A model generated the notes under the pieces. That model worked only from the letters and a program-made list of their open reading frames with translations. It did not search any database and was not told the DNA's origin. A DNA stretch of 64,000 nt from Utricularia gibba (lineage: Eukaryota; Plantae; Magnoliophyta): positions 744,001-808,000 of the forward strand of contig NEEC01000009.1 in the NCBI GenBank assembly GCA_002189035.1, read 5' to 3'. Made by a program: the position numbers and the translations under genes. Of the stretch, positions 40,642-54,800 are shown one piece after another (the stretch's first letter is position 1; each line of letters opens with the position of its first letter).

Positions 40642-41408
40642 CTAGAAATCTCCGGGCCAATGAATCGCGGCGAACTCGCTCATTTCCGGCCATAATTCGG
40701 CCGGCAGCGGAGACGACGCCGTGTAATCAGTAACCGATGGGTAGAACATCATCGTTTCATCCAGCGTACTCCACGCGTTGTACTGATTGTCGTATTCGGA
40801 GTAGCATCCCTGAACCTGAGGGTGCGTATCAACTGTCGGAGGCGGAGGATTGGATGATCGGTGTTGATCGGGGGGAGGATTCGAGGGTTCTCGATTCGCG
40901 AGCTTCACGTTTTCAGGGAAATTGAGTTTCGCTTTGTTCCCCGAAACCTAAGCGCCTCCATGTCGTAGGCCATCGCCGCCGCCTCCGCCGTATCGAAAGT
41001 CCCTAGCCACACTCTCGCCGCCTTAACGGGATCTCTGATCTCCGCAGCCCATTTCCCCCAGGGCCGTTGCCTCACTCCCCTGTACTTCCTAGGCGACGAA
41101 TCCCGATTCAGCGTCACCACGGTGCTGTATGCATACACCGCCGGTCCTTTCACTATCGTCACAATACTCCCCGATTGCGAGCAGACTCCCCCGCCTCCAC
41201 CTACTTCTCCGGCGTTTGTCAAAGTGGACATCATTGTTGACACCCCCATCTCTCTGCTGTAACCAGGTAACATTGAGTAATTACCATTCTCGCTGTGAAA
41301 GAATTGTCTGTGGGTTGTTTCGATTTCGATTCCTCCTCCCCATGAATGGAACTGGAAAGCTTCTGGTGAACTGTTCTCCACTTTGAAGTCACGCATATGC
41401 AGAGTCAT
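40642..41408 (-). CDS. AP2/ERF transcription factor, probably group X (ABR1/ERF110-like)
   Basis: AP2 domain [42 protein letters not shown]; N-terminal [13 protein letters not shown] resembles the group X MSAMVSAL motif. One extra G at 40939-40942 gives [15 protein letters not shown] and joins the 40642-40908 ORF. TATATATA upstream near 41500; start codon 41408 or 41396. Confidence 0.85.
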
Positions 41409-42782
41409 TGAATCCAGAGGTGAGACTCCAGAAAAGCGAGATTCTTCTGGTGAGTCAAAGCAGAGAGGAGATGAGTGATCGTTGAAGCCAGCCAAGTCTA
41501 TATATATACACGCACACACAGCTGGGTATGAACCCATCGGAGTCGCAGGGAATGTTCGGGGGAGGTGGTTGCCTTTGACAATTTCATGGAAATGGGAGAC
41601 GTTGGCCTTTTTAAAAATGACAAAAAAAAAAAAAAACCAATCCAATACGACGTCGCTCAGTCAGCCATAGCCGGTGCCCAAACCGATAGAAGTAACCACT
41701 GCTACTGTAAGGGGGAGACCTTGTAATTTTCATCTCATTTTATTTAACTTAATAACTAAATAGAGAAAACAAACATATTGAATATTTTTATTCTATTTTT
41801 AAACGAAAGTCAAACCAAAAAAATAAAAAAATTGTATAGATATATCAAAATTTCACGTTAGTTAAGGGAAATAAAATTTACGAAACATTTGGATTAGAAT
41901 TTGATATCTCCATTTCGATATATTATTTTATATTTTTATTTGTAATTCCTTATTTTTTATTTATATTAAAAACCAATGAAATTATAATTATGTTTTTCGT
42001 ATAAATAAAACATTTTTATTCTTTATCCATATATTACTATTAAAATATTTTCACTATGTTCAAATCTAGTAAATAAATAAATCCTTAAAAAAATCTAAAA
42101 AAAGCAGGTGACAGGTGTAGTCAACGCCGATGTCAATCGGCGTGCGGGGTGGGTGTTCACACCTCCCTGCGAATGGACGGAATCCTTTGTTCCCTTTGTG
42201 CCGACGAAATATTATTGTTTAAGCTCTTTTTTATCCATGTGATGATTTAATAATATAATAATATAATAAAAAAGAATTTCCCTTTCTTCTCCATCCAGCA
42301 AAAGATAAGGGCATCTGGCAACCAAATATATATTCCTTTTCACTGAAAAGGATTCACATGCCTGAAAATAATTAATACTTTTTGTTTTTAAGTGACTTAG
42401 TTGTCTTTAATAGACAGTAATTGCAATGATTTGAATAAAACGGTAAATAAAATTGCTTGTTTTAATATAACAAGGGAATTATTTCAACACACGGGAGTGT
42501 TCGTTGCCTTTTTCGCAGGTGGGGACACTGGCTGCCGCAGATTCATTCAACGCAGGGGCCGGGGCCAGGGCCAGGGGAGTTGGTTAGAACATTCTTTTTA
42601 ACACGATCCCTATAGTAAGTTAGTTTTAAATGATACAACAAAGTTTGGATTCCACGCGCTTTGCTAAATGGAAGAGCAGGATCACTCACAGTTTAGAAGC
42701 ACAAATAGGCATCTCCCAAATGGATTGATTCCACAAGCAGGCTGCGGCGCGGTGCTGCTATTCGTGTCTGGTCTTGGAGTCA

Positions 42783-45700
42783 TCAGCTCCCACAGGCCAG
42801 ACACTCGTCACGGTTCTCTAGAGAGCATGCTATCTGTGCCATCTTCTTCAACTCATCCTCGCTCTCGGCTTCTCTCAGGTTCTCTCGCAGGCCCTGCAAC
42901 CAGGCCAGCCATTCATTCATCATTAGGAATGAATGAGATGGGGAATGTGCAGAAGCTGATAAACACCTACATTTTGTTTTAGCATGGTGGTGTCCACTGT
43001 GAACTTGACGGCGTCCGCTGCAGCGCGTGTTCGTAGATAGTACATTCCTGTTTTCAAGCCCTTCCGTGCGCAAAAACACAGCCATCAGTAACAGAAAAGG
43101 GAAGCAGTGCGGACATTTCAGATGATCGATAGGACTCGGTTAAGAGGTGCAGCAACAATTCAGCCAGGCTTACATACCTTGGACCATGCGTAGAAGTGCA
43201 AGGAGGTTAGCTTTCCGGTTGTGGGTTCATCCATATGAATGTTGAGGCTCTGGCTCTGGTCTATGTAGCTGCCCCGATCGGCCGCCATGTCCACCAGCGC
43301 CCTTTGCTTGATCTCCCAAACAGTCCTGGATACACAGAATTGAATGAGTGATAACCCCAAGATGCACATGGCGCCAGCACGCTTTCAGAAACCATACTTG
43401 TAAATTGCCTTTAGCTCTGAAGGAATCTCGGGAATGTTTTGCACGGAACCATTCTGGTAAATTATGCGGTTCTTGAGAACTGGAGACCAGAGTCCCAGCT
43501 CTGTCAAATCATGTAGGAGATGCTTATTCACCACTACGAACTCCCCACTACAAACAAAAAAATAAATAAAAGATCAAATTTAGAATGGAGCATACGCAGA
43601 AGAAAAATAAAGCAAAACAAATGAGTACTCAAGGAAATCATACCTTAGAACCCTGCGGTTATATATATTAGATGTATACGGCTCAAAGCATTCATTGTTC
43701 CCAAGAATCTGGCTTGTGGAAGCAGTTGGCATTGGGGACACCAGAAGTGAATTCCTCACTCCATTGCTTGCAATGTCGGCTCTAAGAGTAGGCCAATCCC
43801 ACCTTTCAGAAGGTTTTACCCCCCACATATCGGGCTGAAGAATACCCTAAACGAGTGAAAGAAGCAATGTCAATGCATGGTAGAGTCTAACATTTCCATA
43901 AAAGGAAAAATCGCAAAGGCTCTAAAAGCTACCTTGCTGACTGGACTGCCAGTGTATGTTTCATATGGACCTTGAATTTTAGCAAGATCACAAGATGCTC
44001 TTAAAGCGTGGTAGTAAATTGTCTCAAAAATATCCTTGTTGAGCTGCTGGGCCTGCATCATTTCAATAACACGTTAAAGAAACGCAGGCAATACAAGCGA
44101 ACATGAAAGAATGAATAAATGAAAAAGAATTTATACCTCTGGAGATTCAAAGGGCATGCCAAGTAAAATAAAAGTATCTGCCAACCCTTGCACACCAATT
44201 CCGATTGGCCTGTGGCGCATGTTAGAACGCCTAGCAGTTTCAACAGGGTAATAGTTGGTATCTATTATCTTGTTGAGGTTTCTAGTAACAATCGAAGTCA
44301 CCTGCACTGACAAGATGGGGTGAGAATGACAACTACAAGCATCATCAAATGCTACATATCCGGCACAAGACAAGGGAAGAAAATGAGCAAGACCTCTGCC
44401 AATTTTTTAAAGTCAAAATATCTGCTCTTGAAACCTAGACTCCCCACAGGCTTGGCAGGCTGCGAATCTGGAAGCATTCCCTGCTTGAAAGGGAATTAAA
44501 AGGACATTAGCACATTTGATACCATAATTGCAAATCCGTGTCATTTATAAGCTAAAGTACCTGTTCTCTAACACATCGAGGCAGGGCAATGGATGCAAGA
44601 TTACACACTGCTGTTTCCGTGGGACTTGAATACTCGATAATTTCAGTACACAAGTTGGAAGATTTAATGGTGCCAAGATTCTGCTGGTTGCTTTTTCTAT
44701 TGCAAGCATCCTGAAATTCATGTACATCATGTCACATCACCATAATAGATGATACATGTCAAATAGAGATCATGGCAGGATGACTACCTTGTACAACATG
44801 TACGGATTTCCTGTTTCAATCTGGGATTTCAATATCTCGGACCAAAGATCCCGCGCCTGAACAACCTTCTTTGCTTTCCCCTGATGCAAACCCAAAATCA
44901 CATGAAGCAACAATTCATTGAATCATGCCTTACAAAGATGACGCCTTTACCTCTGCTTCATATCGCGTGTACAATGCTTCAAACTCCTCACCCCAACAAT
45001 CAGCTAACCCTGGAGACTCATTTGGACAAAAAAGCGCCCACTTTTTATGTGCACGAACTCTTTCCATGAACAAATCTGGGATCCAAAGGCCCAAAAATAA
45101 ATCTCTTGCACGATGCTCTTCCTGAAAGTAGAAAAGAGAATGCCTCCGTCATGTGTCAAGATGTGCTCAAAACACAGACTTTACTTAAGCTGAGGACCGA
45201 TAAAGAAAGATTCACCATGTAATAATGACTAACAGCTATACCTTCCCGTGATTTTTTCTCAAGTCCAGAAACTCGAAGATATCTGCGTGCCATGGCTCCA
45301 AGTAAACAGCAAAAGCACCTGGTACATCGGCAAATTTTATTAGCTGCGCATTTGAGCCCTGCGTTTATGTACCAGAGTATTCACCTTTCCTCTTTCCACC
45401 TCCTTGATCCACATACCGGGCAGTGTCATTGAAAACTCTAAGCATAGGAATAATTCCATTCGATGTCCCATTTGTACCACGTATATAGCTTCCTGTGGCA
45501 CGGATGTTGTGGATCGAGAGACCGATGCCACCCGCTGATTTGCTAATCACAGCACATTCCTTCAGGGTATCATAAATGCCCTCAATACTATCTTCCTTCA
45601 TGCACACCAAGAAGCAGCTGCTCAACTGCATGTGATACAAGGAAAACCGATCATACACATATCTCTATCTGCCTAGTAAGAATTCTTTAGCATACTTGTG

Positions 45701-46597
45701 GCCTTGGTGTTCCAGCATTGAAAAGTGTGGGAGAAGCATGGGTAAACCATTGCTGAGACAACAGATGGTATGTATGAACAGCGGATTCAATATCATCCTT
45801 GTGGATGCCAACCGCAACCCTCATCAGCATATGTTGAGGTCTTTCAACAACCTGTCCGTTGATCTTTGAAAGGTAGGACTTTTCCAGAGTCTTGAAACCA
45901 AAGTAGTCATACCCAAAATCTCTGTCGTATATGATTTCACTATCAAGTCGACCAGAATTCTGTAGAGAATTTAAAAAAAAAAAAAAAAAGTGGGGGCAAT
46001 GCTCAGGTCAGGTTTGCTGAGCACAGTTACATGAGGCTGGACAAGGTGTGAGTATCGAGTACCTTCATGATCACATCATACACATCATCTGCAATCAAGG
46101 ACGCTTTGAGTCCTGACCTCTCATTAACATGGTTGTACATGTCCTTAATCCTTCAAGCGCATTCAAGAGCAGTTTATACGAAAAACCACAAATTTTGACG
46201 GATCCATAAAAACCGAACGCAAAAATGAATTCTTACGTTTCTGAAAACGATTTCTTGGTATTTTTATGCAGATTGGATACAGCAATCCTTGCAGCCAACT
46301 GAAATACAGTACCAAGAAAACGAGCACAGTCAGAAAACGAAAATCAGAATCAATTAAGACAAAACTCACCGACGCATAATCAGGATGATTGGCGGTCATG
46401 GCAGCAGCCGTCTCAGCAGCTAATTCATCAAGTTGGCTTGTAGTCACCCCTTTATAGACCCCTGCACAGACTTTCTGCGACACCAAAACAGGGTCACAGT
46501 GCTCGGTGCTGAGACCGTAACTCAATTTCTTGAGCCTCGCAGTGATCTTGTCGAAATGAACAGCCTCATACCGCCCATCCCTCTTAACCACGTACAT
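42783..46597 (-). CDS. RNR1: Ribonucleoside-diphosphate reductase large subunit, left copy (intact at the only site found to differ between copies)
   Basis: [12 protein letters not shown]-cone start, [15 protein letters not shown] catalytic motif, [31 protein letters not shown]-terminal ECLACGS*. Has six C at 43819-43824, keeping MWGVKP in frame. Confidence 0.96.
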
Positions 46598-46705
46598 CAT
46601 GTCCAGATCTCGCTCACAAATTTTCTCACACAAAGTGTTTGGAACCTTCCACGACCACGACAACCGAACCAAGACCTTATAGAACTTTTCCCTCTTAAAT
46701 TTGGG

Positions 46706-46713
46706 ATTCCCGC
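46706..46713 (+). promoter_or_regulatory. E2F-type element ATTCCCGC upstream of left RNR1 (mirror copy at 46902-46909 upstream of right RNR1)
   Basis: Matches the plant E2F consensus WTTSSCSS, about 110 bp from each ATG. Plant RNR genes are established E2F targets. Confidence 0.55.
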
Positions 46714-47017
46714 GCTTGATATGGGGTCGGCGGTTGGGGGAGGAGGTGGGGGGTCGGACTAGAGCAAAACCTTAGCCGGGAGACTATGAAAAGTCCAATA
46801 TACCCCTCGAAGAAGGTTGGACTTTTCATAGTCTCCCGGCTAAGGTTTTGCTCTAGTCCGACCCCCACCTCCTCCCCCAACCGCCGACCCCCATATCAAG
46901 CGCGGGAATCCCAAATTTAAGAGGGAAAAGTTCTATAAGGTCTTGGTTCGGTTGTCGTGGTCGTGGAAGGTTCCAAACACTTTGTGTGAGAAAATTTGTG
47001 AGCGAGATCTGGACATG

Positions 47018-50000
47018 ATGTACGTGGTTAAGAGGGATGGGCGGTATGAGGCTGTTCATTTCGACAAGATCACTGCGAGGCTCAAGAAATTGAGTTACGG
47101 TCTCAGCACCGAGCACTGTGACCCTGTTTTGGTGTCGCAGAAAGTCTGTGCAGGGGTCTATAAAGGGGTGACTACAAGCCAACTTGATGAATTAGCTGCT
47201 GAGACGGCTGCTGCCATGACCGCCAATCATCCTGATTATGCGTCGGTGAGTTTTGTCTTAATTGATTCTGATTTTCGTTTTCTGACTGTGCTCGTTTTCT
47301 TGGTACTGTATTTCAGTTGGCTGCAAGGATTGCTGTATCCAATCTGCATAAAAATACCAAGAAATCGTTTTCAGAAACGTAAGAATTCATTTTTGCGTTC
47401 GGTTTTTATGGATCCGTCAAAATTTGTGGTTTTTCGTATAAACTGCTCTTGAATGCGCTTGAAGGATTAAGGACATGTACAACCATGTTAATGAGAGGTC
47501 AGGACTCAAAGCGTCCTTGATTGCAGATGATGTGTATGATGTGATCATGAAGGTACTCGATACTCACACCTTGTCCAGCCTCATGTAACTGTGCTCAGCA
47601 AACCTGACCTGAGCATTGCCCCCACTTTTTTTTTTTTTTTTTAAATTCTCTACAGAATTCTGGTCGACTTGATAGTGAAATCATATACGACAGAGATTTT
47701 GGGTATGACTACTTTGGTTTCAAGACTCTGGAAAAGTCCTACCTTTCAAAGATCAACGGACAGGTTGTTGAAAGACCTCAACATATGCTGATGAGGGTTG
47801 CGGTTGGCATCCACAAGGATGATATTGAATCCGCTGTTCATACATACCATCTGTTGTCTCAGCAATGGTTTACCCATGCTTCTCCCACACTTTTCAATGC
47901 TGGAACACCAAGGCCACAAGTATGCTAAAGAATTCTTACTAGGCAGATAGAGATATGTGTATGATCGGTTTTCCTTGTATCACATGCAGTTGAGCAGCTG
48001 CTTCTTGGTGTGCATGAAGGAAGATAGTATTGAGGGCATTTATGATACCCTGAAGGAATGTGCTGTGATTAGCAAATCAGCGGGTGGCATCGGTCTCTCG
48101 ATCCACAACATCCGTGCCACAGGAAGCTATATACGTGGTACAAATGGGACATCGAATGGAATTATTCCTATGCTTAGAGTTTTCAATGACACTGCCCGGT
48201 ATGTGGATCAAGGAGGTGGAAAGAGGAAAGGTGAATACTCTGGTACATAAACGCAGGGCTCAAATGCGCAGCTAATAAAATTTGCCGATGTACCAGGTGC
48301 TTTTGCTGTTTACTTGGAGCCATGGCACGCAGATATCTTCGAGTTTCTGGACTTGAGAAAAAATCACGGGAAGGTATAGCTGTTAGTCATTATTACATGG
48401 TGAATCTTTCTTTATCGGTCCTCAGCTTAAGTAAAGTCTGTGTTTTGAGCACATCTTGACACATGACGGAGGCATTCTCTTTTCTACTTTCAGGAAGAGC
48501 ATCGTGCAAGAGATTTATTTTTGGGCCTTTGGATCCCAGATTTGTTCATGGAAAGAGTTCGTGCACATAAAAAGTGGGCGCTTTTTTGTCCAAATGAGTC
48601 TCCAGGGTTAGCTGATTGTTGGGGTGAGGAGTTTGAAGCATTGTACACGCGATATGAAGCAGAGGTAAAGGCGTCATCTTTGTAAGGCATGATTCAATGA
48701 ATTGTTGCTTCATGTGATTTTGGGTTTGCATCAGGGGAAAGCAAAGAAGGTTGTTCAGGCGCGGGATCTTTGGTCCGAGATATTGAAATCCCAGATTGAA
48801 ACAGGAAATCCGTACATGTTGTACAAGGTAGTCATCCTGCCATGATCTCTATTTGACATGTATCATCTATTATGGTGATGTGACATGATGTACATGAATT
48901 TCAGGATGCTTGCAATAGAAAAAGCAACCAGCAGAATCTTGGCACCATTAAATCTTCCAACTTGTGTACTGAAATTATCGAGTATTCAAGTCCCACGGAA
49001 ACAGCAGTGTGTAATCTTGCATCCATTGCCCTGCCTCGATGTGTTAGAGAACAGGTACTTTAGCTTATAAATGACACGGATTTGCAATTATGGTATCAAA
49101 TGTGCTAATGTCCTTTTAATTCCCTTTCAAGCAGGGAATGCTTCCAGATTCGCAGCCTGCCAAGCCTGTGGGGAGTCTAGGTTTCAAGAGCAGATATTTT
49201 GACTTTAAAAAATTGGCAGAGGTCTTGCTCATTTTCTTCCCTTGTCTTGTGCCGGATATGTAGCATTTGATGATGCTTGTAGTTGTCATTCTCACCCCAT
49301 CTTGTCAGTGCAGGTGACTTCGATTGTTACTAGAAACCTCAACAAGATAATAGATACCAACTATTACCCTGTTGAAACTGCTAGGCGTTCTAACATGCGC
49401 CACAGGCCAATCGGAATTGGTGTGCAAGGGTTGGCAGATACTTTTATTTTACTTGGCATGCCCTTTGAATCTCCAGAGGTATAAATTCTTTTTCATTTAT
49501 TCATTCTTTCATGTTCGCTTGTATTGCCTGCGTTTCTTTAACGTGTTATTGAAATGATGCAGGCCCAGCAGCTCAACAAGGATATTTTTGAGACAATTTA
49601 CTACCACGCTTTAAGAGCATCTTGTGATCTTGCTAAAATTCAAGGTCCATATGAAACATACACTGGCAGTCCAGTCAGCAAGGTAGCTTTTAGAGCCTTT
49701 GCGATTTTTCCTTTTATGGAAATGTTAGACTCTACCATGCATTGACATTGCTTCTTTCACTCGTTTAGGGTATTCTTCAGCCCGATATGTGGGGGTAAAA
49801 CCTTCTGAAAGGTGGGATTGGCCTACTCTTAGAGCCGACATTGCAAGCAATGGAGTGAGGAATTCACTTCTGGTGTCCCCAATGCCAACTGCTTCCACAA
49901 GCCAGATTCTTGGGAACAATGAATGCTTTGAGCCGTATACATCTAATATATATAACCGCAGGGTTCTAAGGTATGATTTCCTTGAGTACTCATTTGTTTT

Positions 50001-50831
50001 GCTTTATTTTTCTTCTGCGTATGCTCCATTCTAAATTTGATCTTTTATTTATTTTTTTGTTTGTAGTGGGGAGTTCGTAGTGGTGAATAAGCATCTCCTA
50101 CATGATTTGACAGAGCTGGGACTCTGGTCTCCAGTTCTCAAGAACCGCATAATTTACCAGAATGGTTCCGTGCAAAACATTCCCGAGATTCCTTCAGAGC
50201 TAAAGGCAATTTACAAGTATGGTTTCTGAAAGCGTGCTGGCGCCATGTGCATCTTGGGGTTATCACTCATTCAATTCTGTGTATCCAGGACTGTTTGGGA
50301 GATCAAGCAAAGGGCGCTGGTGGACATGGCGGCCGATCGGGGCAGCTACATAGACCAGAGCCAGAGCCTCAACATTCATATGGATGAACCCACAACCGGA
50401 AAGCTAACCTCCTTGCACTTCTACGCATGGTCCAAGGTATGTAAGCCTGGCTGAATTGTTGCTGCACCTCTTAACCGAGTCCTATCGATCATCTGAAATG
50501 TCCGCACTGCTTCCCTTTTCTGTTACTGATGGCTGTGTTTTTGCGCACGGAAGGGCTTGAAAACAGGAATGTACTATCTACGAACACGCGCTGCAGCGGA
50601 CGCCGTCAAGTTCACAGTGGACACCACCATGCTAAAACAAAATGTAGGTGTTTATCAGCTTCTGCACATTCCCCATCTCATTCATTCCTAATGATGAATG
50701 AATGGCTGGCCTGGTTGCAGGGCCTGCGAGAGAACCTGAGAGAAGCCGAGAGCGAGGATGAGTTGAAGAAGATGGCACAGATAGCATGCTCTCTAGAGAA
50801 CCGTGACGAGTGTCTGGCCTGTGGGAGCTGA
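47018..50831 (+). CDS. RNR1: Ribonucleoside-diphosphate reductase large subunit, right copy (apparent 1-nt deletion at 49791-49795)
   Basis: Mirror image of the left copy with the same motifs. Five G instead of six at 49791-49795 shifts the frame at DMWGVKP. Confidence 0.93.
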
Positions 50832-51890
50832 TGACTCCAAGACCAGACACGAATAGCAGCACCGCGCCGCAGCCTGCTTGTGGAATCAATCCATTTGGGA
50901 GATGCCTATTTGTGCTTCTAAACTGTGAGTGATCCTGCTCTTCCATTTAGCAAAGCGCGTGGAATCCAAACTTTGTTGTATCATTTAAAACTAACTTACT
51001 ATAGGGATCGTGTTAAAAAGAATGTTCTCATCAATAGAACTTAATTCCCTTGTGTTGAATGAATCAACAGCAGTCGGAGTTTCCACCTGGGAAAATGCCT
51101 CTCTTTGTGATGTCTCATATTGAGGAAGAATGGTGATTTAAAAAAGTGGTCATTGTCATCTCACTGTGATAAAAGTGATCACCTAACATGAAAAAAAAAT
51201 GTTAGTACGTGAGAGAATATTTTTCTAAATAACCCTAAATAAGGATTAAACGAATCATGTATATTGAAAATGATAAAATTAAATAGAATGATTACATAAA
51301 TATTATATGATGTTTTTTTCTCATACATGATTGAACATCTTTGATAATGATTTCAAAATTAAACATGTTTGAAATGAGGTAAAATAAATATAGATTACCT
51401 ATTGTTAATTCAATAATAATTTGGTAGTTTAAACATATAATATTATATAATACAAGCGTAAATTGTTACATCTTCTCGCGGAGTGTTGTCACCACCAACA
51501 ACTCCCTAACTTGCTCATTATGTTTGTTTTAATCATCATTTAATACTAATTTAATTTTTTATAATATAAGTATATGTTTCTTTAATCTGTAGATATAAAT
51601 GGAACACAATTGACTTTTAAAATATATACTTGATTAAAAATTATTTAAATGAAGTAACATTTAAATTTCAGTTCTCAGTAAACAATACTCTTTAAACCTT
51701 AATTTACATATTGAATAAGAAATTTAATTTTTCATTCTAGACATCATCATCACAGATCAAAGCATACTCAGACATCTTCCTGTCTTCCATTGAACATAAT
51801 TCTATACTTAAACCTAACTATTTGCAGATAATGAAAGAATAATAATGTTGAATAAAAAAAAAAGGAATGAATGGAAGGCAATGTTTGTTT

Positions 51891-54800
51891 CTAGGCAGAA
51901 GAAGTATAGTCGTCGTCACAGTTGAGACCGCAGACTTCGAGCACGGGCCCTTGTCTGGACACAAACGGGTCGACCCGGACCCAGACCAGGGTCAGAATGG
52001 ATGCCAGCAGAACAGACCAGATGAGGAGGACGGTGGGAACCCTCTCCTGCTTCCCGGTCAATCCCTTGAGGAAGGGATAGAGGTGCATGATGACCCAGAT
52101 GGCGAAGAATAGCCTGCCGAAGAGGGGGCCCCACGAGTCGTACCCGTTGTTGATCGCGTCGGCGGCGCCCACGACGACTCCGACGATGTTGAGGATCAGG
52201 AGGGTGGTGGGCGGGATCAGCAGGGTGGTCCATTTGAAGACGTACAGCTCCGAGAACTCTCCGTCGTCTCCGGATTTTGCGGTCACCGTGAAATTGGTGT
52301 TCACGCCGGCCAGGACCTTGAGGAGGCCTTGGAACAGGGCGAACAGGTGGGAGGAGACCCCTCCGATGACCCAAAACTGCTCGTTTCTCCACCAGTCGTC
52401 GAGGCCGACGCCGCCCCATTGCATTTCGAGTATGCTTGTCGCAGCAATGGAGATGAAAAGCGCCATGAATATGATGCTGGCAGCGTTGCTGATCTGCAAG
52501 AATGTTGCATGTCTGAAGATGCGCAAAAATGTGGATAAAATATGCTGGCTTCTGCGACACGTACCTCAGGTACAATGAACTTTCCGGTGAGAAGGCAGAT
52601 AGCCGGCAGCGTGCAGTATACCAGCAATGGAAGTGAAGTCCATGGATACACAACTGAGTTTATGTATGAGAATCGCTCCAACCATTTCAATCCTCCACCA
52701 TATCCGTACCAAATTGGGCAGTGCCGACTCAGAAAAATCTCCACTGATCCAAGAGCCCACCTAAGCACCTGGTGAAGACGATCAGACAGATTGATGGGAG
52801 CAGACCCTTTAAACGCAGGCCGCTTGGGCATGCAGTAAATAGAGCGCCATCCATGGCAGTGCATCTTGAAGCCTGTCAAGATATCTTCTGTCACCGATCC
52901 GTATATCCACCCCACCTGGTCAGCTTATTTCTGAATTAGAACAACACAAGAAACATGTGGATTGTGTAAGCTTAAGGTGATGATGAGGTTACCTCCTTTC
53001 CCCACTCCGTCTTATCTTCATAGCAACAGCTGATGACATGGAGAGCTTCCATCAAGCGTGCTGTGCTACCCAAACTCGAAGGAACTCCACCATTGGGCAG
53101 CAGTGTTGAAGCCACGAAAGAGGGAGATTGCCCAAACTTCTTCTCGAGTCTCCCTTGAGAGAGATGATCAGCCACAGTTTTCGGCTCTGTGAGCAAACAA
53201 AATCATTTTGCAGTTGAGTCCCAAGAGACTTGTCTCTTCTCTGCTTCTCTTTCTTTAGCATACTGCAAAATGAGAATGTTTTGTACCTTCAAGACGTTGT
53301 TCAATAGCTTCAAGGGCATGAATTTGCTTCGAGGCTTCTCTGTTCTTTAGTTTCTTATTTTCTTTCTTCTCTTTGCATTTCTTGCTTCTCCTAGAACGGA
53401 GACAGCAGCAACACCACTTGGGCCAGCAATTGCAGGTCTTACCAGGCTGTTTCTTCTTAGGAGGTGCATCGTTCCCGTAAAGTGCCTGCCTTCGGAAGAC
53501 GCATCCAGTCCCAACATAAATAGGTCCTTGAAGACCATCTAAACCTTTCATGTTGATCTGCATAAATTACAGAGATTCGTAGGCCACAATTTTTCATGGT
53601 ACTAGAAAACTGAGTAAGTGAAAGATGGGTTGTCAGAGGCATACATCGAAGAACACAACATTGCGATTGGAATATCTATCATGACGATCAATCCCATCAA
53701 ATCTTTGAGGAAACTGCACATAACACACTTTCTTCCCCACAGTAGGATCCATCATGAAGCACATGGCTTCTCTGAGAGCTTGGCTGTTGTTTATGTAGTG
53801 ATCACAGTCGACGTTTAGAATATAGGGAGCATTGGATAGAGATGCTGATACACGGATCTGAATATGCAGAAAGAAAATGAGAGTCACTAAGGTGGTAATA
53901 CGTTAAGAGCAAAACATCTTATGCCATTATCTGTACTCACCAGAGCATTCATTGCCCCAGCTTTCTTATGATGCTCAAAGCTAGGCCTTTTTTCACGGGA
54001 AACGTACACCAAGCGAGGCAGCATACCTTGATCCTCATCATTCCCGATTACCTTCAAAAAAACCATGACACTTGTTTGCTATTTCTATATACATTTGCAG
54101 TACATATAGTTCGCAGAATGAAAAGACTAACCTGTATCATGCTGGGATGGTCCCGGACATTGTTGGCCGGCCAGGTTGTGCCATCCCGCAATGTCCAGCC
54201 GCCCTCCGGAACCTTTTGTGATGTAGCTACCAATTTGTTGATATGAACTTTGAGCTCATCATATTCTCTCTGCACAGCATCAACAAAAATATTTGAGTCC
54301 AATGTGTTAAAATTATTGCCAGAGCTCAGCATCAGCAAAATATAAAGACCTTCAGAGCACGCCTCTCTCTCACAAATTCAGGATGAACTTTGTTTTTAAG
54401 ATAATCCATCTTCTGGCCAAAATACCACTCCGGAGCACGTGGTTCAATGTTAAACTTCTTGCAAAAGGGAACCCATCTTTTAGCAAATACTGATGTCTCG
54501 GAAAGAGCTTCAAACGTAAGCATGGATCCACCATCATCCGAGACATAGCAAGATACTTTGTCAACTGGATAATCCACAGCAAGAATGGAAAGTACAGTGT
54601 TGGCTGTAATCAATGGAGGCTCCTTCATCGGATCAACCGTGCTTACAAATACATCAATATCTGCCAACTCCGAGGGCTGCCCTTCTCGCTCGTATCTAGA
54701 AAATCAGAAATTGCCTAAGTCAGCACTTGCACCTATCCGAAAAGCCATGTTCATAATATAATCTACAGATACCTGAAAGATAGCCTGTCAAGGTATGTTT

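Follow-up and report, generated by a model that had tools for sequence, protein, structure and literature searches.

How can two inverted gene copies lack a single substitution, introns included, and still be bordered on both sides by mirror-image sequence that has diverged by about a quarter? This question is raised by a gene-dense stretch of 64,000 nucleotides of plant DNA from Utricularia gibba (here called the window; positions are counted from its first letter), in which two RNR1 genes, encoding the large subunit of ribonucleotide reductase, lie head to head between an AP2/ERF gene and a cellulose synthase (CesA) gene. From the sequence alone it had been proposed that the palindrome is old and that recurrent gene conversion between its arms maintains it (the original prediction). 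Our analysis points to a partly different answer: we favour, with moderate confidence, a real palindrome with a history in two stages, namely an old inverted duplicate that was later renewed over a whole arm in one recent event of re-synthesis or conversion.

The arms of the RNR1 palindrome

Strict identity of the arms starts at 42586 and ends at 51028, and the abruptness of these two edges, on which the original prediction was built, is borne out by the arm alignment (mismatches at 42583 and 42585; with its imperfect ends the palindrome extends over 42580/42586–46798 and 46817–51028/51034). Not one substitution was found when the arms were aligned with each other over 4213 nt, introns included. 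The predicted identity of the 4.2-kb core therefore holds for substitutions; it does not hold for length, as the arms differ in three G/C homopolymers, and in these only. One of the three (C6 at 43819–43824 versus G5 at 49791–49795) lies in a coding exon, where the left RNR1 with its G6 reads P-D-M-W-G-V-K-P and the right RNR1 with its G5 reads D-M-W-G-stop. The right copy is thus either a very young pseudogene or carries a homopolymer consensus error. All three differences could be long-read errors; indeed, because the AP2/ERF neighbour as assembled also contains a 1-nt frameshift, homopolymer errors of the assembly at this locus are plausible, although not proven.

The left gene has its start codon near 46597–46600 and its stop codon at 42783–42785, followed by a 3′ UTR of approximately 200 nt. 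Its exon open reading frames match the Pfam families ATP-cone and Ribonuc_red_lgC (the RNR1 barrel domain), and in tblastn with RNR1 representatives the query residues 15–765 were aligned over 46597–42992. It should be noted that the edge of identity (42586/51028) is located some 200 nt past the stop codon, right behind A-rich motifs resembling poly(A) signals, and that the arms correspond nearly exactly to the transcription unit plus approximately 210 bp of upstream sequence. The two copies share a promoter region of about 420 bp, which is itself palindromic, the sequence further upstream being lost. An E2F-like element (ATTCCCGC) is present in each arm about 100 nt from the centre (46706–46713 and 46902–46909). 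The region 46699–46916 matches the Rfam model MIR1858 with 120–122 bits on both strands, which is under the gathering score of 137, and other miRNA precursor models only weakly; most likely these matches merely reflect that the G-rich centre of a palindrome is a perfect hairpin.

Diverged mirror homology outside the arms

Just outside the arms the reverse complement of 42506–42558 aligns without gaps to 51047–51099 with 40 of 53 positions identical (mirror block of 49–53 nt), as had been claimed, so that identity drops abruptly at the arm edge from 100% to about 70%. The two blocks are 9 nt off the mirror position, which was also correctly noted, because the gaps that separate them from the arms are unequal, with 27 nt at the left arm and 18 nt at the right. 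These gaps cannot be aligned with each other; the last 6 nt on the left match the right side at four of six positions. A comparison with shuffled sequences, the check that had been suggested, clearly supports the homology: the local alignment of the flanks has a score of 27, as against means of 10–17 for the dinucleotide-shuffle null, and with flanks of 200, 500, 1000, and 2000 nt this score was reached in 0, 0, 1, and 0 shuffles, respectively, out of 300. When the left arm with its flank was compared by blastn with the whole 64-kb window, the block pair was found with E = 4.7e-4 and there was no third copy, and a search of the 64 kb with degenerate patterns covering either half of the block gave these two sites only. 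The additional exact 12-nt mirror match between 42470–42481 and 51042–51053 is present as described and was equalled in 4 of 1000 shuffles. Beyond 42506/51099 no significant homology was detected (local alignment of 42300–42509 with 51096–51305; score 13, null 13.5), and no relics of RNR1 were found in the window outside the arms.

The divergence of the block is 24.5% raw or approximately 0.30 when corrected. Read from left to right the 13 mismatches comprise five C>T, two G>A, and six other changes. The earlier count of seven C>T or G>A mismatches among the 13 is therefore correct; the polarity assigned to it, with the right copy as the changed one, is unproven, and at 42515 and 42529 it is the left copy that is derived (see below). 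Two other explanations of the block were considered and rejected. Clustered deamination at the junction, which would give 25% divergence in one recent event, does not agree with changes on both strands, with the six changes that are neither C>T nor G>A, and with the indels. A structured RNA or known RNA family is not supported, as the block has no Rfam match and folds unremarkably (z-scores +0.84 and −0.20).

Two copies of the motif CCCxTGxGTTGAA (gene sense) bracket the block in the left flank (42484–42496 and 42546–42558, 62 nt apart), and a degenerate second copy may be present on the right side at 51100–51113. Together with the displaced 12-nt match, the second motif copy points to a minor local rearrangement or duplication on the left side.

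Measured from the RNR1 stop codon, both blocks lie at nearly equal distance, and their orientation agrees. The simplest reading of this arrangement is that both descend from one RNR1 3′ flank. Since the block abuts the edge of identity on both sides, at matched distance and orientation, and is not repeated in the window, the best and most economical reading is that the inverted homology is older than the present identity of the arms.

It could be argued that there never was an older RNR1 duplicate, and that a one-off recent inverted duplication met a short inverted element (a dispersed repeat or a conserved 3′-end or terminator motif), which either provided the homologous sequence needed at the second junction or played no part. 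The homology is indeed only about 50–80 bp long and cannot be extended, an edge some 200 nt past the stop codon and near likely poly(A) signals makes a 3′-end motif conceivable, and the second, partial CCCxTGxGTTGAA copy and the displaced 12-nt match hint at a short motif that is repetitive or mobile. However, there are no more than two copies of the block in 64 kb, it belongs to no Rfam family, and it has no stable fold; its near-equal distance from the 3′ UTR of RNR1 and its orientation on both sides are what a common RNR1 3′ flank predicts; and a third RNR1 paralog, which diverges from the stop codon on, shows that RNR1 3′ ends are not generally conserved. We therefore consider a one-off duplication improbable.

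Independent evidence for the outer junctions

Contigs of four DNA runs were compared with 41800–47000; they contain the introns and no splice joints. The left junction is spanned by a contig of run X1 (2013) over 42566–42852 without differences, which includes 20 left-specific nt (an exact match, although under the 31-nt bridging rule). At the right junction, contigs of run X3 (2013, another sample) and run X7 (2016) match 42586–42852 and then continue exactly into the first 30 nt of the right flank. The words of 50990–51250, which cover this junction, occur completely in X7 (1.00) and to 0.54 in X3; X7 may, however, be the sample from which the assembled DNA came. Five RNA-labelled runs contain 17–21% of these words. 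Thus, in short-read DNA one RNR1 3′ end is followed by two different flanks, the left one in X1 and the right one in X3 and X7, from which it follows that at least two RNR1 copies with the assembled outer junctions exist. The duplication and both of its outer junctions are real.

The third RNR1 paralog mentioned above lies elsewhere in the genome and appears in X1, X3, and X4 as loose ends at the stop codon (42783): its last 70 coding nt are alike with 3 mismatches, and from the stop codon onward it is fully diverged, with an unrelated 3′ UTR.

In view of these data an assembly artefact, by which a mis-join or a long read of chimeric or fold-back origin would have created a palindrome that is absent from the plant, is largely excluded and in our estimate very improbable. 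Its attraction is that all differences between the arms are homopolymer lengths, the typical consensus error of long reads, that the ERF neighbour has a 1-nt frameshift, and that the centre lacks coverage in the independent window-like runs. But the outer junctions are found in independent short-read runs (the left one in X1, the right one in X3 and X7), an artefact cannot create diverged flank homology, and the spacer matches genuine upstream sequence in run X4. The statement that neither a read artefact nor a simple one-step recent duplication explains the diverged flanks is supported, since the mirror similarity is genuine and lies immediately against the edge of identity on both sides.

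A diverged lineage apparently without the present centre

Run X4 (2019) carries the same species label, and its RNR1 differs from that of the window by 3–4% (76 substitutions and 19 gaps in 2455 nt); the divergence of the flank block is roughly seven times as large. The X4 orthologue of the left flank (42281–42560) includes the block and at 42515 and 42529 shows the state of the right block, so that these two differences must have arisen on the left copy. This is as expected if both blocks are related by true common descent.

More informative for the centre is a second X4 contig (record 23), which matches 46742–46812, that is the arm and 14 of the 18 spacer bases (46799–46812), and then continues for at least 779 nt in sequence unlike the window; with up to 3 mismatches allowed, the 64 kb contain no match to the first 30 nt of this continuation. 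If a 3-nt indel in a GAA repeat is allowed, X4 is collinear as far as T46818, two bases inside the right arm, leaving a 2-nt microhomology (TT/AA) at the start of the new arm, which is too short for significance. Judging from this contig, the spacer is original upstream sequence of the left RNR1 copy. The present centre looks young and of the fold-back type because the X4 sequence leaves the palindrome within the spacer and enters unrelated sequence. That at least one copy or haplotype of X4 is without the present centre is suggested by this alignment, and suggestive is all that it is. X4 was not found among the runs that contain words of the right junction (50990–51250).

These results bear directly on the original prediction, according to which the palindrome is long-lived and its arms are kept alike by recurrent conversion (concerted evolution), the outermost edges having escaped and drifted to 25%. 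Diverged homology exactly outside a sharp edge speaks for this, as such an edge can become self-sustaining once divergence blocks heteroduplex formation, and the read depth of X4, several-fold higher over the gene body than over the flanks, is compatible with more than one identical copy collapsed there. The process is established for sex-chromosome palindromes, one of them in a plant (PMC7023750, PMC8981503). On the other hand, the X4 upstream sequence departs from the palindrome within the spacer and goes on for at least 779 nt that are unrelated to it, and X4 does not appear among the runs that contain the right-junction words. An 18-nt spacer between perfect arms of 4.2 kb is, as a matter of general knowledge, an unstable configuration, and ordinary conversion tracts are far shorter than 4.2 kb. 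With no substitution and no gradient of divergence toward the edge, one event is sufficient. The part of the prediction that concerns older inverted homology is therefore upheld; recurrence is not, as a single genome proves only that the last event spanned the whole arm. Likewise, the flank homology is old, but it is doubtful that the palindrome itself is, the centre being different in X4 and the 18-nt spacer suggesting youth. Recurrent conversion is in our opinion unlikely, although it deserves more weight than the other alternatives considered here.

A proposed history in two stages

The two-stage history that we favour would have begun long ago, when a second copy of RNR1, comprising at least its 3′ end, came to lie in inverted orientation at the locus. 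The remnant of this first stage would be the mirror homology in the outermost 50–100 bp or so on both sides, which is diverged by about 25% and bears indels. Since the left neighbour (AP2/ERF) and the right neighbour (CesA) are unrelated, the old duplication did not include the neighbouring genes. In the second stage, a recent break just upstream of the left copy may have been repaired via fold-back priming or long-tract synthesis, whereby the left gene would have been copied outward for 4.2 kb until the homologous old 3′ end on the far side, the patch next to CesA, captured the new strand. The sequence between would have been replaced and the former upstream sequence deleted, leaving a palindrome with zero substitutions and an 18-nt loop. 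This second stage is derived from the anatomy of the locus and from one comparison (X4); the order of events, the mechanism, and the assumption of a complete gene, not just a fragment, as the old copy are all inferred.

The present core requires only one event because there are no substitutions, no gradient at the edge, a tract reaching the centre of the hairpin, and diverged homology on one side of the tract only. Diverged homology at the outer end alone and a tract into the hairpin centre fit fold-back re-synthesis better than ordinary conversion tracts, whose length is far below 4.2 kb. With so short a spacer a perfect palindrome is unstable, and the 18-nt spacer between 4.2-kb arms argues for youth.

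There are several observations that weigh against the two-stage history. The homology ends beyond about 80 bp, and the old copy could have been a very short fragment. The copy number of the block was counted over 64 kb, and the block could still be part of an element dispersed genome-wide. In the runs resembling the window (X1, X3, X7) 45976–47000 is uncovered, so that the assembly is the sole source for the palindrome centre. X4 is a single run, whose non-palindromic upstream sequence may represent just one copy or haplotype among several, and a palindrome may be present in X4 as well. The word depth of X4 is 74–130 over the gene body (42787–46724) as compared with 9–23 on the flank, upstream, and paralog contigs, and X4 has no contig on 42561–42782 (3′ UTR), which would be expected in a simple orthologue; it should be considered, however, that contig depth is not copy number and that gaps in contig coverage prove nothing. 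The depth pattern could reflect an amplification of RNR1 in the X4 lineage or a sampling effect.

Finally, the locus may be a recurrent hotspot of fold-back and amplification, at which the palindrome was formed or reset more than once and copy number varies between U. gibba lineages. Old edges around a young core would follow from repeated formation or resetting. We regard this as improbable, slightly more so than the one-off duplication, yet well ahead of an artefact.

Neighbouring genes and feature coordinates

The coordinates of the features are collected in Table 1. The frameshift in the AP2/ERF gene lies at about 40930–40940, at the end of the AP2 domain, where the frame changes after RFRGTK and homology to the Genlisea ERF protein continues in the other frame. 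The best match with broad coverage to this gene is from Genlisea aurea (55% identity); the 7.5-kb contig of G. aurea shares the AP2 domain only, and neither RNR1 nor CesA was found nearby on it. Overlapping CesA open reading frames near 52500 were considered as a further assembly frameshift, which was rejected because a 71-nt GT...AG intron separates them. A protein search with the RNR1 exon-1 open reading frame did not find a near-identical protein, and a protein library clustered at 50% returned no full-length plant RNR1. The 23-nt sequence at the palindrome centre had 0 matches in JGI metagenome contigs.

Table 1. Features in and around the RNR1 palindrome (positions in the 64-kb window)
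Feature	Positions	Strand	Remarks
AP2/ERF gene (left neighbour)	40642..41645	−	1-nt frameshift near 40935 as assembled
12-nt exact mirror match	42470..42481	.	Matches 51042–51053; adjoins second CCCxTGxGTTGAA motif copy
Left flank block	42506..42558	−	Just past RNR1 3′ UTR; 40/53 to right block
Left-only 27 nt, block to arm	42559..42585	.	G/C-rich, microsatellite-like (CCGGGG CCAGGG CCAGGGG ...)
Left arm	42586..46798	−	Complete RNR1 (ribonucleotide reductase large subunit) with introns; from inverted repeat, Pfam, tblastn
G-rich tract near centre	46723..46752, mirrored 46862–46891	.	Two compensating G-run length differences between arms
Spacer, 18 nt (TATACCCCTCGAAGAAGG)	46799..46816	.	Symmetry centre between arms
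Right arm	46817..51028	+	RNR1 mirror copy; from inverted repeat
Right-only 18 nt, arm to block	51029..51046	.	Between right arm and right block
Right flank block	51047..51099	+	40/53 to left block
Cellulose synthase gene, 3′ part (right neighbour)	51891..53563	−	Unrelated to left neighbour

Significance of the locus

A perfect palindrome that bears genes and has next to no spacer is not expected to persist for long. The combination of datable old edges with a young core thus provides a natural time-stamp for the making or renewal of such palindromes in plants. If a palindrome turns out to be present at this locus in several lineages, the locus would stand as a rare case, in a plant and outside the sex chromosomes, of concerted evolution in a palindrome; if not, it would offer a clean natural case of fold-back repair that was resolved in a homeologous patch. 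Both outcomes bear on the copy number of RNR1 and on possible hairpin-RNA formation in the U. gibba genome. Should the hotspot explanation be true, the dosage of the rate-limiting enzyme of dNTP synthesis would vary as a trait, and this in a genome noted for its extreme DNA turnover. For annotation it is of importance that both RNR1 copies and their outer junctions are real, and that the homopolymer frameshift in the right copy should be checked before this copy is called a pseudogene.

Comparison with known systems

Arm-to-arm conversion is known to keep sex-chromosome palindromes near-identical, for example on the primate X and Y chromosomes and on chromosome 15W of willow (PMC8981503, PMC7023750). 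Like the RNR1 locus, these palindromes are gene-bearing inverted repeats with near-identical arms, introns included, and with sharp outer edges, and their identity is attributed to intrachromosomal conversion. Near-complete identity of the arms including non-coding sequence, as is typical of a maintained palindrome, was also found here. The differences are, however, considerable. Sex-chromosome palindromes are tens to hundreds of kb in size with spacers of kb and more, whereas the RNR1 palindrome has arms of 4.2 kb and a spacer of 18 nt. They lie in non-recombining regions, the RNR1 palindrome in a seemingly ordinary gene-dense region flanked by ERF and CesA. And they are common to species that separated millions of years ago, whereas for RNR1 one diverged lineage (X4) was examined, in which the same centre was not seen.

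Interlocus conversion between inverted paralogs likewise yields an identical tract, introns included, that ends abruptly at diverged homologous sequence. A plain conversion tract is bordered by diverged homology on both sides and leaves the intergenic spacer in place, whereas the RNR1 tract reaches the centre, with diverged homology on its outer side and with neither diverged homology nor a long spacer on its inner side. In an assembly fold-back artefact the junctions would be absent from independent data; at this locus the outer ones are present.

Fold-back (hairpin-primed) inverted duplications are known from "inv dup del" rearrangements and from palindromic amplification. They resemble the RNR1 locus in having head-to-head arms, a short loop of original sequence, distal loss, and an exact new arm. 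Indeed, the short spacer at RNR1 is original sequence contiguous with one arm, as judged from X4, and the sequence distal to the proposed break is lost, as judged from the first 30 nt of the X4 continuation within the 64-kb window. The classical fold-back event concludes with a terminal deletion or with healing of the chromosome end, whereas the new arm of RNR1 ends interstitially, in a pre-existing patch of diverged homology. The RNR1 palindrome is a known kind of event, which shares features with sex-chromosome palindromes, with fold-back duplications, and with conversion between inverted paralogs.

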